This document shows positions 35,799-43,707 of a stretch of DNA of 64,000 nucleotides, piece after piece; the first letter of the stretch is position 1; the number at the start of each line of letters is the position of its first letter. This stretch comes from Pocillopora damicornis (Eukaryota): assembly GCF_003704095.1 (NCBI RefSeq), contig NW_020844487.1, forward strand, positions 186,001-250,000. The letters are read 5' to 3'. The notes beneath the pieces are model-generated. The model worked only from the letters and a program-made list of their open reading frames with translations. It was not told the DNA's origin and did no database searches. The translations under genes and the position numbers were made by a program.

Positions 35799-36260
35799 TC
35801 AAGAATCTTTCCGATCTGTGTCTTTCGGATCTTTGGAAAGCGTTAGTAGATATCCCGACAATAATTCTTGATACAAACTTGCAACATACCACACCGGAAA
35901 ATACTGCAAAGTTATCAAGCCGTAAACATTCCATTGTTGATTACTGTAATCCCAAGGACAGGCATTAAAATGTCTAAGCACTACACCCCAACTGAACTCC
36001 CACAGATACACCCAAATGACGTACAGAACACCTCGAACAGGCATCGGCAAGTACCACTTGTCCTTGCAAGTCAAGTACATTTGTTCAACCACAAAGCTTC
36101 CAAATCCATACTGGAAAAATGACCATAAGGAAGAGTGCCCACGGAATTTCCAGTCAAGGAAGTTCGATTCGACAAAATTAAACAACGATGTGAAGACTAT
36201 TTCATCGAAAAACCCGTGGAGACCGTAAAGGAAAATTCGTAACCAAGCGTTGACCGCCAT
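35799..36260 (-). CDS. TMEM229B: Transmembrane protein 229 (TMEM229B-like), intronless, 153 aa
   Basis: MAVNAWLRIFLYGLHGFFDEIVFT...GHSSLWSFFQYG...WEFSWGVVLRHFNACPWDYS...GLITLQYFPVWY carries the YG.HG..E, CPWDYS and GLITL motifs of TMEM229. The ATG at 36260 is preferred over the upstream extension. Confidence 0.9.
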   Translation of the reverse strand: MAVNAWLRIFLYGLHGFFDEIVFTSLFNFVESNFLDWKFRGHSSLWSFFQYGFGSFVVEQMYLTCKDKWYLPMPVRGVLYVIWVYLWEFSWGVVLRHFNACPWDYSNQQWNVYGLITLQYFPVWYVASLYQELLSGYLLTLSKDPKDTDRKDS

Positions 36261-36397
36261 ATGGTAAGAATCCCCAGCACTATACCCTCGGTTGGAGTTT
36301 CGATATGTAGTATCCAGTCCCTCCTTATCTCGGTATCCAACATGGCGTCGACAACTAGATACGCCAGTCATAGAAAACAGTTTCTATAGCGTTGACG
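36261..36397. promoter_or_regulatory. Compact bidirectional promoter between TMEM229 and the DUF445-like gene
   Basis: Only 137 bp separate the divergent ATGs. YY1-like CAACATGGCG at 36338-36347; both start codons also sit in ATGGCG. Confidence 0.6.
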
Positions 36398-39300
36398 ATG
36401 GCGACTTGGCCGGAAGCGAACAAAAAACGCAATCATGCACGGTGAGAGCATTCTATTTCTCATTTTGTTCCCCGATGATATGTTAAATTTTCGAGCTCTC
36501 GATCGAATGATAGGTCTACTTTCAGTTTTCATACTAATTTGCTTTGACGCACTATTTTACAGTTCTGCACCTAGTTGCCAAGCCTTTGATTTGGAGTGAG
36601 GCTGAAGGTGACCTTGTTGTGATAGAGAACAGTATCTTGTAAGCATGAGAACAAAGTAATTTACATTTGAAATGCAGCTACGTCTGTATCATAACAAGGT
36701 CACCCCTAGCCGCACTCCTGTTCAAAGGTTTGGCAATGAAGCATACAACTGTAAAATGGACCATTGTTCCCCTTCAATTGTTGTTGTTGTTTTTTTGTCT
36801 TTCAATATTATGATCCCTTATTTTAAAATATACCCCAACTATACAAGCTACCATGAATGATAGGCAACCGGATACAAATTGTTGCTCCTATTCTGTGCAT
36901 CAGGCACAGTTCCTGGAGGGAAATTCAAAAAGATGATTTCCCAGTTTGCATTACTTGCTCTCCTTATAAAGCACATCTAGACTGAGTTCAGAAAAACCAA
37001 AGCCAAATTAACTAGAACAGCCAATCAGAGCAAAGTAAAAGATCACAGGGAGTCCATCAGATATCAAAGTATAAACAAAGCAAACTGTTTGAGGTGTAGG
37101 AAAGTGCAAGGGACCAAGTGGCAGTTGGTTTAAGTTTTGAATCTGACTGGCTGAGAGGATGGGGCAGTTTTTTTGGACAGATCACATGGAAGAATAAAGT
37201 TAAACCAATTGAATCCCACATTACCTTCAACACTGTCTTAAGCAAGGTGTCAATTAAAGGAAAGGGAGTGGAAATATTTAAACATTTATTGGCTGAAATT
37301 ATCTTTAACCCCCAAGAGTGATTACTAACCATTTTCCCCTTTCAGTATCACCCCTAAAACAAACATTGAGGTCTTGAGAATAAGAGAAATGATCACCAAC
37401 TGAAGACGCTCTTGATTGTTAAAGAAATTCTCTTTGTCAGGACCATAGGGAATGTATAGAGAACAGTATGGAGAAAGTGCAATCTGATGTTATAGTGTAA
37501 AGGGTTAACCTGAAGTGTTATAGAAAGTAAAGTTAAGTGATAACATTGTCTTGTTACAGAAATGCAACCCTTGAGTTACTATCAGATGGTAGAAGCAGAC
37601 ACTCTAAGAGCGCTCAAGCAAGCAGCAGGGTTACAGAATTTGAAAATCTAGGTCTCTCTGTGGAACGAGATGGACAAGCTATGAGTGATGTGTCATCCTT
37701 TCACTCAGAATCATTGTACAGTCAGCATGCTGATAGTTTGCGCATATCTGCAAGTGTACCCTCACACTTGTCACCAGAAGTTGTATGTTTTTCTCTTTTT
37801 CAGATAAATATTTTATTTTTATCAAAGACATTTTTGCTTTTGGTTATTTTGAAAACTAGGCCAACATGGAAGTTATTTATCCCAATCCTAATAAGAAAAT
37901 GGAACTCGTTATAACTTGGCCGGTTGATATTTTATGAAGTTTCAGAATTGATGGTTAGCAGAAATGTCATGTTCTGAGAATTTAAAGTGCTCTTTCTGAT
38001 ATATCACAGTAGCACAATTAAATGCAGAATGCTATTTTGAATGGAATCCAACCTGTTAATCTAATATTTTATGGAAAGCATAAACACATAGTGAAAATCT
38101 CCAGTTTAGACACCTATGGTGGTGTTTTACTTTACAAGCTCATGCTGCATTCAGATATTATTTTTATTTTCTTTTTTCTACTTTTAATCTTAACCTGCTT
38201 GTATTCCCAAAGACATATCAGAGAAGTTTACCAAACATAACTATTGGCTGTGTCAGTATTGTTGTTACCTTCTTCCTCTTCATCACTGGTGTAATTCTGG
38301 ACACAGTTTTTAAACAAAAAAATGAACAAAAAGGCAAGTGAGATATTTTAGTTGCCTATAATTAGTCATTACATTAAGAAAATCTATACTTAGAATAGAG
38401 GTTGCATAAGCTTTTTCATACATGTGAATGTTTTTCTTCACTGTCTGTCTTGGCCAGCTTTTAGATTACTGTAATTCCTTGAATGAGAGCCCATTCTCTA
38501 ATAAAGCTATTCCCCTGGGTAGGCACCCACCCCTTGGGCCATGAAATCAAACAAGTGCCCCTCTTAAACAAGCCCTCCCCTCCTACCTTACTTTCTCAAA
38601 TAGTGGAGATACAAGGAAAACCTGTTTCTATTGCAACTGTAGAAGAATCAATACAGGTTTTGTGCTGATGACGAGGAAATACAATACATTCTAAGATTGC
38701 TCAAAGCCCATCATTTTTGTGTCTGTAGTGGCCAAGCATGTATTCTTCATTCAATCAACCAGTTATTTATTGTAATAATATGTGCAAGAGCTGCAAGCTT
38801 ATTCAGATACAAACTTATAATAAAATAAATTACTTGTCTGAGAAATATAATAGCCTAAAGTAATGGAACAGCATTGGCAGTGTTTTATTGATTTATAGAT
38901 GGTGAGTTATAAGTGATAATACATCATTATTGATTAATTTACAAATGGATTAAGCATTAATTGGTATCTACAAATGATTAAATTTTTCTTCTCAGTAATT
39001 AAGACGGCTTGTGAAGTGTTGATGGCAGCAGGGCTCTTTGGATTCACTGGTATGATGATATCTATTCCAGTGTATTCTTATATTTCTTTACCTACCGTTT
39101 TCTCAGCCACCATTTTTAGGACTGCTTTATTATAATTGATATTGTCCAGAGCGATGATTTACTAACAGAAGGAATTGTTAATGTTGTAGCAAGAGGAGTA
39201 GAGATCATGACACATATTAAAAAAAACCTGTCCCTTTTTTTAATCCAAGTTCATCATGAATTTTGCCTTCCAAACTAGATATTTGACCAATCGGCAAGAA

Positions 39301-42300
39301 CCTATTACATGCTCTGTTATTGTAGGAACTCAGTTCTTCATTGATTTTTTCTTAACCCTTTACACCCTAACATCAGTATGCATATTCTCCTTACTACTCT
39401 CTAGACATTTCTTAGGGTTCTGACAAGAAGAATTTTCTTCAACAATCAAGAGTTTCTTTAGTTGGTGATCATTTCCTTTATTCTCATGACCTCAATGTTT
39501 GATTGAAGGGTGATTTTGTAAGAAGAAATTAGATGTTAGTGACTCTAAGGGATTGAAGGGTTTAAGCATTAACAATGAACTTACATCAAATGATGTATTT
39601 TGCTCTGTTGCTTTAGGTGGAGTAACCAACTGGGTCGGAATTAAACTGATATTCAACAGGATTCCAGGATTGTTTTTTAGGCATGTGACCCTTGCTGTTG
39701 CCTTCTGAGGGGGGAAGTTCATCTTTACCCTTTGTTCTGTAGCATTCTTGTAGCTTATTAGGCTGCAATCAATTGTCAAAGTATAAGATTTTTCCTGCAA
39801 CACAAAACTTAATTGTTACTTCTCAAATTGGTTTCGATATGTAAGCTTTGGATTCTTTGAAAAAAAGGAAACTACTCACTCTAAGGGGGTCAGTGACTTT
39901 GAAGAGGTTGTTCCAATGTTTCATAGCCAAGCAACATTTATACTTTCATTTGACTTATATGCAGTTTTACATTAAGTTAATGAACTCAGCCTATTATTAG
40001 TAAGTTACAGTTGTAATAATTCTCATTTTAAGTCTTCTTGTTTTTTTCCACAGTGGAGCCATCATTAAGAATTTTGTAACTGCTAGGAAACTGATGACCA
40101 ATTTTATTCTTGAGGCATTTTTCAGTCCTTCACAAGTTAGAAATTACATTAATGACAAAAAGAGAACATATCTGACAGTAGAACAGATAGGTAAATTATG
40201 ATACATTTTATGACAGTTTAGATATATCTTTGCCTTTTTAAGTTGTTCTTTTTCTTGGTTACTATGGAGATTTCCACTTTTTTTAGAACTTAGCAAAATT
40301 AGTGAAACAATGCAACAGTAACAATATTGGAGTTTCTTCTCTGCTTAGGAATAGTACTGTGAACCAAAAGTAGTTAATTTTGATGCTTTTAGTGCAAGTC
40401 TAGCTAAGTCATGCCTTGGAAAGTTTAGCTGCTAAATTTTTCTTGAATCTTATTTTATATATGTATATGTTTTTTTCAAACAGACTATCAGCTTGAGAAA
40501 CTTCTCAATTCCAGAATTGCAGAAGATTTGATTCATGAACAGTTGGAGGTTTTGATGGGAACACCAGAAGGTAAGTTGATTGGTCCATTCAGCAGGTACA
40601 TTTACTGCTTCATTTGGCAGCATATGGATTTGTTGGTTAGTGGATTGAATTCTGACTGCTTTGGGTGACAATAATCCCACCTGGTTAGGAATAAATTAGT
40701 TGGCTATTTTCATTTAAGGAGTTGAAGGTAAGGCAAACAAGCACAACCTCAGGGTGCAGCTGACGGAAGGGTGTGGATCTGGGATTGTATTGTTATTGGA
40801 TTAACAGTGTCCAATATCATAAATTTTATCAAGCATCATGCACTATGTCTGATGAATTCATGTTTTGTTCAATAGCCTGTACATTGGTTAATTTTTTAAA
40901 ATTCTTTTCCTTGCCCTTTGATTCATTTATCAATCCATCCATCCATCTATACCTACATTCCTACATGCATGCTGTTCATTTAGTAGTTCAATTTGTTGTT
41001 TGTTTATTTTTACATTTACTTCTTAGTTCATTCATGTAGTCATTCAGTCTGCCAGTCATACATGAACTTAGTCATTAATTTGCTTTTTTATGCATTATCA
41101 ATGCCCACACCTTCCCATGCAAGGGCTTAATTGTGTCTAACACATGCCCAAATCATAAAATTTTTAAAAGGGAAAATTGCAATGATTAAGTATCACAGGG
41201 AACCACCAAGTGCTCATTGTCTGGTTACAGACCAGTATAATAGCCCCTTCCTCTGTAAAGTGAAGGTTAATGACTTTGTGGCATGTTGTCTGATTTTTAA
41301 TTGTAGGTCTCAAACTTCGTATGCTTGGTGTCACCAAAGCCAAACTGGCGCCCCTTGTAAAACCTCAGTTGATGAAGTATAAAACACACATCGTGCCATT
41401 GGTAAGGAAAAAGGGCAGTATACCTATTGTCCTTCATTATCTAATTCTTCATTTGCATCTTAACCCTTTGCACCCAAACGTCAGTATGTATATTCTCCAT
41501 GCTGTTCGCTTTACATTTCCCAAGGTGCTGATGAGGAGAATTTGTTTAGTGAAGAGTATCTTTGGTGATCATGTCCTTCATTCTCACGACTGTGATGTTT
41601 GATTCAGGGCTGATATTGTAAGGAGAAATTAGATGCTAGTCACTCTAAGGAGTCAAAGGGTCGAAGAAAGTCGTCAACAGGAATTGAACCTGTACGTGCA
41701 TCATATGAAATTCACCATCATGCGAACTGTGAATAAAAATTATGTTGAATGGCTGATGTTCATGTTTTGTTTTGTTTGTTTTTGTAATGTTTTGTAGTTA
41801 CTCTCATCAATTGAATCAGTTGATCTCTTTAATGCGGATCACCTCAGAGAACAGGTATGCATTCTTTTAGATAATGCGTAATAGAAGATACCCATTTGTG
41901 CTATTTAACTTTTTAAAAGTATTTTACACTATTCCATGGGGCCTTGGCACTAGGCTCGGTGCAATGCAAGGTGTGCTGTTTCCATCACTCGTTTCTGTTC
42001 CACTGCACTCCCATACCGTGCATTTCCAGACAGTCAGAGTATGGCTTACTCCCTTCAAGTAGTGCGACATTTTTGTCTTTGTTCTTTTTTTTTCCTTCTA
42101 AAGATTGTGGATTTGATTTCAACAAGGACGCAAGAACTGTCCGCACAACAAGTCAAGCTGGTAAGTGACATCCTTGAGTAATCAACTGTTATGTTCTCTT
42201 TCTAATGTTTAGCAATAGCGTTATCTGGCCTCGGCTTTGAAGAATAAAGTAAAGAGGAAAAAAGAAAATCTTAGGTTATGTGGAAAAAAATCATTGTTAA

Positions 42301-43042
42301 TAATGATATTTTTTCAGGCGAGAAACTGAAAGGCCTGGTTATTTACATGAGGTCTAAACCAAACCGCGCTTTTAAGCAAGCAGAAGGTGTCAGGGATTCT
42401 CTATAAGAGGGTTGGTTTATTTAAATAAATGTCTTTCCACTATTAGCTTTAGGCCCTCTTGACACTGTTCACAAACTTAAACGTTCAGATAATAGGTTTG
42501 GCTTACTTGCAGATGGATTACAACGCGGTTTTGATAAACAACGGCTAAACTTTGTTTAAATAACCAGCCCGAAAGGTTTCTTTAGGGAGAAGAAAGTTAT
42601 AAGGTGTACAATAGTTATCTTCACAAAAAAGAGCAAGTGCTCTTTCTGGTAAATCCTTGAAAGTTGTTGCTGAGTATCTGAGCAGATGAAACGATCTAAG
42701 CTGTGGAACGATGCGTAATGAGAGAATTCGACGAGAGGCAATTGATCGCTTGAAATCGTAATCGTTTAAACAAGGAGATAAACCCCAGCGAGCGTAAATG
42801 CCCATTATTTTGCAACGAGTACGACTTGTTCAACTATCGTTAACAAGTTGGGTGATGGTGAATTGTTCTTTAACTTAAGAATTCACCTGATGTTAACGTG
42901 ACTCTCCTTATCTGTGCACGTGTAGCTGGTCGAAGACGCGGTCTACCGACATTTAAGTTGGATAGTTTTCTGGGGGAGTGTGTTGGGAGCTGTGGTTGGC
43001 TGTGCAGCCGAGCTCGCCTCCGTTTACATCAACGGCACGTGA
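36398..43042 (+). CDS. DUF445-like (bacterial-type) membrane protein; 11 coding exons, ~351 aa
   Basis: Exons 36398-36441, 37560-37782, 38213-38333, 38996-39049, 39617-39680, 40054-40190, 40484-40570, 41307-41401, 41798-41854, 42104-42160, 42926-43042. Total 1056 nt, all phases consistent, two GC donors. The translation includes AAGLFGFTGGVTNWVGIKLIFNRIPGLFFSGAII and TRTQELSAQQVKLLVEDAVYRHLSWIVFWGSVLGAVVG, which match the N- and C-terminal signatures of DUF445 proteins (G..TNW.A..MLF...PG..GSG.I and L.EL.P..VK......HL.WLV.WGGV.G...G). Confidence 0.85.
37299..37508. mobile_element. piggyBac-like MITE (reverse orientation)
   Basis: Reverse complement of the 39352 copy; ends TGTAAAGGGTTAA. Confidence 0.7.
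39352..39564. mobile_element. piggyBac-like MITE
   Basis: TTAACCCTTTACACCCTAACATCAGTATGCATATTCTCC ... GGGATTGAAGGGTTTA, ~210 bp, multiple copies in the window. Confidence 0.75.
41460..41664. mobile_element. piggyBac-like MITE
   Basis: TTAACCCTTTGCACCCAAACGTCAGTATG ... GGAGTCAAAGGGTC; same family as 39352. Confidence 0.72.
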
Positions 43043-43707
43043 CTCGTCAGATGGCTTGGAAACAATGTGTGGGGTCTGGGCTGATTCATTACATGGTCAA
43101 CTTTTAAATGAAAGCCGACTGATCGTACGGGACAATTAACCTTCTGAGCCATAGAGTTTGTCAGGGAGCGATTTGGCCAGCTTCGAAGGTTGCTAAGAGT
43201 GCTCCCGTAGAATGTACACATGTACGTACCATAGATTTCCGCAGATATGAAAAACGTTGTCCGGAACGGCTCACTCAAAGCAAATACACGGTGGATCTTA
43301 AGAAGCTACATTTAGGCTCATGATGACAAAGTGTAAGCATTTGTATGGAATTGCAGATAAATTTTACAAACGTAATGTTGTAAAGGAATTGGAGTTTCAC
43401 AAGGAACAATGAACGAAGAAAATGAAAAAAATTAAAAGGTTAAGGAGAGTTAAGGCTTATAAATCACTTTCAACAATGGTCTTCTTTGAAACGAGTGTTT
43501 AAAAGCGAGATGAAATTCAAAGCAGGGGCGATCGGCGACCGGCGTAAGACGAACCGTGATCATGACAAGATAACAGCAAAATAAAGGTAATGAAAACTGT
43601 CCGTCTATCTGTTTTTGCTCGACCAACTCTTTTTTAACGCGTTTCCAGTGTACAACCTTAAGTAGAGGAGATAGAGACACAAACGTGTGATGGTTCTCTC
43701 TGAGTTT

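Follow-up and report, generated by a model that had tools for sequence, protein, structure and literature searches.

DUF445 (Pfam PF04286) is a large family of membrane proteins without known function or solved structure, and its members, including YjiN of Escherichia coli and YheB of Bacillus subtilis (UPF0754), are functionally uncharacterised. Classical members of 380–450 amino acids (aa) have an N-terminal membrane helix ending in G-x-x-T-N-x-L-A-x-x-M/L-L/I-F, a helical middle part, and a C-terminal membrane helix with L-G-G-x-L-G-x-x-x-G. Here we describe a DUF445 gene of the stony coral Pocillopora damicornis, located at positions 36398–43042 of a 64,000-nucleotide stretch of its genome (contig NW_020844487.1, positions 186,001–250,000, forward strand; hereafter, the window). 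Its product shares both helices with their motifs and the helical middle part with PF04286. Unlike the classical members, which match it with 27 bits or less, the coral protein is a single unit, predicted to carry an extra first membrane helix and a disordered tail of ~95 aa.

Bhattacharya et al. (2016, eLife; PMC4878875) listed 41 coral candidates for horizontal transfer, several of which are unnamed "predicted/hypothetical protein" entries with a bacterial source. Like those candidates, the gene described here is common to stony corals, has its nearest relatives outside animals, and lies on host contigs. In contrast, no DUF445 entry is named in that list, and in our case the statistical tests single out neither a donor nor a direction of transfer.

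Structure and transcripts of the coral DUF445 gene

The gene consists of 11 exons on the + strand, which together give a coding sequence of 1056 nt (351 codons and TGA). The phases of the spliced exons are consistent, no in-frame stop interrupts them, and an upstream in-frame stop lies 8 codons before the ATG. A run search showed that 24 public runs, polyA RNA libraries among them, contain the gene's stretch. RNA contigs of four runs from four studies were aligned to positions 37150–43149, a span outside which the exon 1–2 junction falls. Nine introns (37783–38212, 38334–38995, 39050–39616, 39681–40053, 40191–40483, 40571–41306, 41402–41797, 41855–42103, and 42161–42925) were skipped exactly, at the same intervals in each run, which gives 9 of the 10 junctions. 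Eight introns have a GT donor and two a GC donor (AAG/GCAAGT at exon 3 and TAG/GCATGT at exon 5); among the nine skipped introns, seven read GT..AG once the offset is taken into account and two read GC..AG. A pyrimidine tract is present at every acceptor. The exon 1–2 junction is supported indirectly: RNA contigs extend 121–728 letters upstream of exon 2, and MATWPEAN...R-NATLEL is read across in orthologous proteins, both transcript-derived and from RefSeq. Spliced contigs were deepest in the polyA libraries of the four studies, and unspliced RNA or DNA contigs covered the introns at lower depth. These results bear out the original prediction, made from the sequence of the window, that 11 exons splice in phase into a 351-aa protein. 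The RNA-seq check that it had called for found the nine joints in 4/4 runs, and every motif that it had quoted was present at its place in short + strand open frames between 36.4 and 43.0 kb. The gene is a functional, polyadenylated, 11-exon gene of P. damicornis encoding a 351-aa DUF445 protein. Its exons are as follows.

Exon 1: 36398..36441, + strand; start codon, peptide MATWPEANKKRNHA, and 2 bases of a split codon; GT donor.
Exon 2: 37560..37782, + strand; Ser/Thr-rich N-terminal tail, residues 15–89, predicted to be disordered; RNA contigs beginning at the acceptor, and joint 37782/38213 in 4 runs.
Exon 3: 38213..38333, + strand; predicted first membrane helix (residues ~100–122, about 38243–38311) and Lys-rich loop; GC donor; joints in 4 runs.
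Exon 4: 38996..39049, + strand; the second membrane helix is predicted to begin here (IKTACEVLMAAGLFGFT); joints 38333/38996 and 39049/39617 in 4 runs.
Exon 5: 39617..39680, + strand; family signature GVTNWVGIKLIFNRIPGLFF, in the hhalign register; GC donor; joints in 4 runs.
Exon 6: 40054..40190, + strand; predicted start of the helical soluble part, residues 169–214, including the invariant G170; joints in 4 runs.
Exon 7: 40484..40570, + strand; residues 215–243, by phase check; joints 40190/40484 and 40570/41307 in 4 runs.
Exon 8: 41307..41401, + strand; residues 244–275, with a profile match in its own genome; joints in 4 runs.
Exon 9: 41798..41854, + strand; residues 276–294; joints 41401/41798 and 41854/42104 in 4 runs.
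Exon 10: 42104..42160, + strand; residues 295–313, of which R302, E305, and L306 are conserved across the subfamily defined below; joints in 4 runs.
Exon 11: 42926..43042, + strand; predicted C-terminal membrane helix with glycine zipper (residues ~323–345, about 42953–43021), and TGA; joint 42160/42926 in 4 runs.

The N-terminus encoded by exon 1 was kept in 14/14 coral orthologs, and exon 4 aligned with the AGLFAFSG block of the bacterial subfamily.

The gene had been presumed to be hidden, and this did not hold: it is annotated in P. damicornis (pdam_00004800), P. verrucosa, Stylophora, Acropora, Porites, Montipora, Oculina, and Desmophyllum. Public databases already contain it as an uncharacterised animal member of a known family; UniRef names some of the coral orthologs "DUF445 domain-containing protein", and the coral entries are otherwise labelled uncharacterised. 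Our literature search found no paper naming DUF445 in corals or these coral gene ids. The deposited P. damicornis model pdam_00004800 (P0028, 346 aa) is identical to the window in 9 of the 11 exons. Its departures from the RNA-supported model fall precisely on the exons ending in GC donors (exons 3 and 5): 13 incorrect residues precede exon 3, whose end is missing, and exon 5 is shortened. The model is mis-spliced at two GC-AG introns, where the P. damicornis gene model is now corrected. The protein of P. verrucosa RefSeq LOC131797741 isoform X1 (P0022, 351 aa) is collinear with the window protein over residues 1–351 and identical at 339 of 345 in-frame residues. P0022 was used in searches as the stand-in for the whole window protein, and the exons of the window were searched singly.

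The gene is integrated in host DNA, with animal genes alongside, spliceosomal introns, and expression. Its neighbours within the window are a G protein-coupled receptor gene, two kelch-type genes, and an Irx homeobox exon, and the AT-rich window (35–42% G+C) has no compositional break at the gene. Contamination from a bacterium or symbiont, or a mis-assembly, might be suspected for a family that is overwhelmingly bacterial. This explanation is practically negligible given the RNA-confirmed spliceosomal introns, the animal genes on both sides, the host-matching base composition, the orthologs of other corals on chromosome-scale scaffolds, and an identity of only about 25–30% to the nearest bacteria. 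The animal neighbours and introns on which the original prediction had relied in arguing against contamination were both found.

Membership in DUF445 and a compact subfamily

P0022 matched Pfam DUF445 with 39.0 bits (E 1.2e-9; gathering cut-off, 33.8 bits), and 14/14 coral orthologs matched the family, of which P0011 (349 aa, Porites-type) alone gave only 30.5 bits. In exon-wise and six-frame scans, exon 11 alone matched positions 335–367 of 368 (19.2 bits, E 0.0012), and the other exons, which are too short, gave no Pfam match when scanned one by one. Three matches outside the window in the six-frame whole-genome Pfam scan (L001–L003) were rejected as low-complexity or spurious. Because the Pfam match covers the C-terminus only, bacterial DUF445 genes were collected from Bacillota and Planctomycetota, and many of these were "short forms" of 195–243 aa. 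In a profile–profile comparison of the coral alignment (A1) with that of 21 bacterial short forms (A2), hhalign gave a probability of 97.6% and an E of 3.5e-12 over 181 columns, pairing coral residues 145–347 with bacterial positions 29–214 of 219, i.e., nearly the whole short form. A local coral profile produced two-part collinear matches to every bacterial DUF445 open reading frame (ORF) tested. T151, N152, F160, and G170 were invariant in all 69 aligned DUF445 sequences, and G148, L323, G330, G334, and G338 were nearly invariant. The collinear whole-domain homology and the signature residues together place the coral protein in DUF445, as judged from sequence, and the family assignment of the original prediction stands. 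PADLOC and NCBIfam gave no matches, and PDB sequence searches returned nothing relevant.

To compare the coral protein with individual bacterial members, every collected bacterial DUF445 ORF was scored with the coral profile. Five Pseudomonadota ORFs of 230–260 aa gave 88–103 bits, and all other DUF445 proteins gave 27 bits or less. These five ORFs resemble the coral protein (24–31% identity) in having two N-terminal membrane helices and the blocks AGLFAFSGAITNWLAI and HLGWLVVWGG. In alignment A3, coral residues 100–122 lie over the bacterial MNKSxxTNxxAxALLAxGY segment, in which G115 is invariant. All 34 genome-derived ORFs of the subfamily (216–262 aa) scored 63–111 bits with the coral profile. 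These comparisons assign the coral protein to a distinct DUF445 subfamily of ~240 aa, whose members have two membrane helices at the N-terminus and one at the C-terminus. Of the designation "YheB/YjiN-type" in the original prediction, the family thus stood, and the YheB/YjiN type gave way to this separate subfamily (63–111 vs ≤27 bits).

The subfamily was present in 29 of 301 sampled genomes of Gammaproteobacteria (about 10%), 1 of 151 of Alphaproteobacteria, and 0 of 151 of Bacteroidota. One of the host genomes of the five ORFs was Vibrio (98.8% 16S identity), and the 16S of two genomes (G514 and G806) resolved them only to a deep gammaproteobacterial lineage and an alphaproteobacterial lineage. 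The hits of P0022 in a tblastn search of plasmids and chromids were confined to Vibrio (seven records, E 7e-22 to 6e-18), and one of these records is annotated "DUF445 family protein". The Vibrio-type proteins of ~235 aa (e.g., WP_166015163.1 of Vibrio sp. HDW18) resemble the coral protein in their two N-terminal and one C-terminal membrane helices and align with coral residues ~96–347 at 24–31% identity; they differ in having neither N-terminal tail nor introns, and they form a clade apart from the coral-bearing clade when metagenomic sequences are added. Gene neighbourhood in five gammaproteobacterial genomes was conserved only within Vibrionaceae. A scan by patterns of the coral profile, covering 185,579 prokaryotic genomes, found no relative because the patterns were coral-specific, and a coral-profile search of ten assorted bacterial genomes, which are without the subfamily, found nothing.

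Two further observations were made on these bacterial sequences. DUF445 ORFs of ~394–432 aa in Pseudomonadota (L178–L184 and L194–L197) each contain two matches, placed end to end, to the short-form profile of ~200 aa, which indicates that the ~405-aa Pseudomonadota forms are tandem doublets of a ~200-aa unit. A record titled Ehrlichia sp. JZT12 (L052) contains ~1.2 kb that is 89–94% identical to rRNA-operon loci of five gammaproteobacterial genomes, with the highest identity (92–94%) to three Vibrio-like genomes; this is unexpectedly high for an alphaproteobacterium, and the record may be mislabelled or mixed.

A JGI metagenome scan gave 563 relatives, some of which scored up to 168 bits with the coral profile. 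They were of two kinds. The first lies on gene-dense bacterial contigs in the order D-Ala-D-Ala ligase (ddl), DUF445, and short-chain dehydrogenase (SDR). In marine contigs of 41–59% G+C (L263, L264, L266, and L268), a DUF445 gene for ~241 aa stands between ddl and a short-chain dehydrogenase/enoyl reductase gene, and in L271 (62% G+C), the ligase–DUF445 adjacency alone was seen. The second kind comprises ORFs of 309–473 aa with low-complexity N-terminal extensions, on short single-ORF or GC-rich contigs. One contig with an extended form (L259) also encodes a 484-aa NTF2-domain protein. The NTF2 domain is largely eukaryotic, and the N-terminally extended proteins are probably from microbial eukaryotes. 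The ddl–DUF445–SDR clade and the extended sequences (L259–L278) give the highest scores with the coral profile (115–168 bits), are about 27–34% identical to the coral protein, and fall with the corals in a common 100/100 clade. The extended marine sequences share with the coral protein a long low-complexity N-terminus; the ddl/SDR context of the bacterial members has no counterpart in coral. A compact ~240-aa subfamily, partly linked to ddl in marine bacteria, is defined by these data, and this narrows the search for its function.

Distribution among corals and origin of the gene

When exon 6 (45 aa) was run with phmmer against 1.84 billion representatives, P0011 was the only full-length protein retrieved, along with exon-sized fragments of other corals. 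A word-index search with P0011 gave 16 further proteins, and every named one was from a stony coral. Together with cluster look-ups, this search provided orthologs from P. damicornis, P. verrucosa, Stylophora pistillata, Oculina patagonica, and Desmophyllum pertusum, which we take to belong to Robusta, and from Porites lobata, P. evermanni, P. lutea, Montipora foliosa, Acropora millepora, A. muricata, and A. palmata, which we take to belong to Complexa. In both major clades, the orthologs keep an open frame of 336–353 aa, with more than 100 invariant columns and a mean column identity of 69%, and the gene is conserved across stony corals of both clades. The gene could still be a transcribed relic, acquired or inherited, without a functional protein product, given that its function is unknown and that unspliced RNA or DNA contigs occur over the introns. 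Such a relic is highly improbable: the frame and the invariant columns are kept in both clades, the family signature residues are all kept, and the polyA libraries of four studies hold the spliced contigs at greatest depth.

No non-coral protein was found at E up to 10 among 5.8 billion proteins, cnidarian proteomes included, with P0011 in the word-index search or with the coral profile. The named orthologs are from Scleractinia only, in word-index, profile, and 45-aa phmmer searches that are not sensitive enough to prove absence. As the original prediction had it for vertebrates, no ortholog from these or other non-coral animals appeared in the searches run.

Two further loci were also seen. 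L177 (8000–14100 of the 207-kb contig ENA ERZ25073755) is a divergent ortholog with 42–61% identity per exon in the coral exon order; its local G+C is 44%, and a reverse-transcriptase ORF lies just upstream. A second locus of the DUF445 subfamily is found in the same genome as the window (G000:C2022:35733-37318, − strand). Profile positions 182–281 fall there in one 145-aa open frame, so that at least two introns are missing; positions 100–206 match ~950 bp upstream, with stops in the match, and identity to a bacterial member is 36% over 64 residues. Either a paralog having fewer introns or a pseudogene would fit this locus.

In the 69-sequence tree, the subfamily and the corals formed a clade with 100/100 support against the short-form outgroups, and subfamily membership of the coral protein is firm. 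With genome-only sampling, the corals stood beside two gammaproteobacterial genomes (96/96). With metagenomic sequences added, the corals joined the N-terminally extended sequences (85/98), and this group and the ddl-linked bacteria lay together in one clade (100/100), separate from that of the Vibrio type. A gammaproteobacterial donor was therefore dropped: the approximately unbiased (AU) test gave p 0.395 for a monophyletic bacterial subfamily, and the 96/96 nesting vanished with metagenomic sampling, i.e., was a sampling artefact. As a caution on method, support of 96/96 under genome-only sampling dissolved once metagenomic relatives were included.

On balance, we lean towards acquisition of the coral DUF445 gene from a non-animal source before the Robusta/Complexa split, because no other animal protein was found even with cnidarian proteomes in the databases searched. 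The stony-coral lineage would have received the gene from outside animals, either from a bacterium or from a microbial eukaryote already carrying it, and would then have gained ten introns and the N-terminal tail while diverging fast. Several results weigh against this acquisition. Neither a monophyletic bacterial subfamily (the p value given above) nor corals outside the best-tree clade (p 0.42) is rejected by the AU test; the position of the coral clade moved once metagenomic sequences were added, and the coral stem is very long (2.6–3.0 changes per site). For sea anemones, octocorals, and other animals, absence was judged from word-index searches and a single phmmer query of 45 aa, and the second locus and L177 show that the family is wider than the named corals.

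Moreover, the sequences nearest to the corals in the best tree appear eukaryotic; vertical descent accompanied by losses would also be compatible with this. The gene might be an ancient eukaryotic one, possibly descended from an organellar or early bacterial ancestor, that was passed on vertically, kept in stony corals and some microbial eukaryotes, and lost in nearly all other animals, model species included. This history would account for the grouping of corals with the extended metagenomic proteins in the best trees (85/98), the NTF2-domain protein on the L259 contig, the ten introns, the very long stem branch, and the second locus in the same genome. It is also consistent with a 282-aa DUF445 cluster in the protein Atlas, 63% eukaryotic among members with a record, and with a microalgal study in which a nuclear locus is noted to carry a partial YheB/UPF0754 domain. 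We regard it as rather unlikely, since it needs very many independent losses and no annotated protein of other animals was retrieved from a database that includes cnidarian proteomes. In addition, the extended sequences are only probably eukaryotic, and the AU test does not favour their grouping with corals over the alternatives. An acquisition before the Robusta/Complexa split is the history that we prefer.

Predicted structure, possible function, and neighbouring sequences

Ser and Thr make up 25% of residues 1–95 and 11% of the remainder, and hydropathy windows peaked at residues 94–124 and 323–348. An AlphaFold2 model was built on the 69-sequence alignment; a model on the 14 coral sequences alone had a mean predicted local distance difference test score (pLDDT) of 39.9 and was discarded. 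In the retained model, residues 1–95 had a pLDDT below 50, and residues 96–351 were all helical with values mostly of 75–97. Helices spanned residues 100–123 (pLDDT ~94), 129–160, a shorter set between 171 and 249, 254–305, and 308–349. The first and last are membrane helices by hydropathy, and AlphaFold2 added a second membrane helix, which bears the family signature motif. The protein is thus predicted to consist of a disordered Ser-rich tail of ~95 residues specific to corals, two membrane helices, the second ending in the invariant Thr-Asn-Trp motif, a soluble all-helical part of ~160 residues, and, at the C-terminus, a membrane helix that bears a GxxxGxxxG zipper; all three membrane helices would pack in one small bundle. 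The Ser-rich N-terminal extension, the two N-terminal and one C-terminal membrane segments, and the helical middle part agree with the topology given in the original prediction. In the Foldseek comparison that it had suggested, no known fold was found, the best match to PDB having E 0.2 and a wide VIA search giving a best Z of 8.5 in a flat list of generic helical bundles, both in the noise range for helical proteins.

No conserved catalytic-type His, Asp, Cys, or Lys occurs among the invariant columns. Bacterial members having one helix at the N-terminus and another at the C-terminus carry an Arg/Lys-rich segment after the first helix, so that their helical part would be cytoplasmic by the positive-inside rule. 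By homology, the tail and the soluble helices of the coral protein would face the cytosol. We tentatively propose that the coral protein is not an enzyme and may serve as a membrane organiser or transport-associated factor, with its coral-specific Ser-rich tail as a cytosolic regulatory site. The gene order ddl–DUF445–SDR, found in the nearest bacterial clade, may point to a function connected with the cell envelope or with lipids and their synthesis. Against this proposal, our literature search (DUF445, UPF0754, yjiN, and yheB) returned no experiment or functional study, no solved fold matches, and no neighbourhood is conserved across the Vibrio-type clade, which has no ddl/dehydrogenase linkage.

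That all named stony corals have retained a spliced, expressed version under selection indicates that the fold is useful in an animal cell, and the coral gene offers a eukaryotic system for studying the location and partners of DUF445 proteins. It may be speculated that stony corals captured a bacterial or algal membrane protein before their radiation, equipped it with a cytosolic tail subject to regulation, and have since retained it in all lineages for a trait specific to stony corals, for example at the membrane of a calcifying or symbiont-hosting compartment. We consider this quite doubtful; if it were true, the function of DUF445 as a whole could be approached for the first time.

A single-exon ORF of 190 aa lies head to head with the gene (35799–36371 of the window, − strand), with 27 bp between the two ATGs. 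It has a weak match to PF06541 (E 2e-4, under the cut-off) and presumably resembles TMEM229; no TMEM229-like neighbour was found within 8 kb of L177. The transcripts of this ORF and of the DUF445 gene probably overlap, since one RNA contig has 728 letters upstream of exon 2. Introns 1, 4, and 8 of the DUF445 gene each contain a copy of a ~210-nt repeat (37303–37508, 39350–39566, and 41458–41666), in both orientations and with 74–81% identity. ARAGORN found no tRNA genes in the span holding these copies. RNA-contig depth over the repeat ranged from thousands to 42,000, and many contigs jumped between copies. The element is a very abundant transcribed repeat family.

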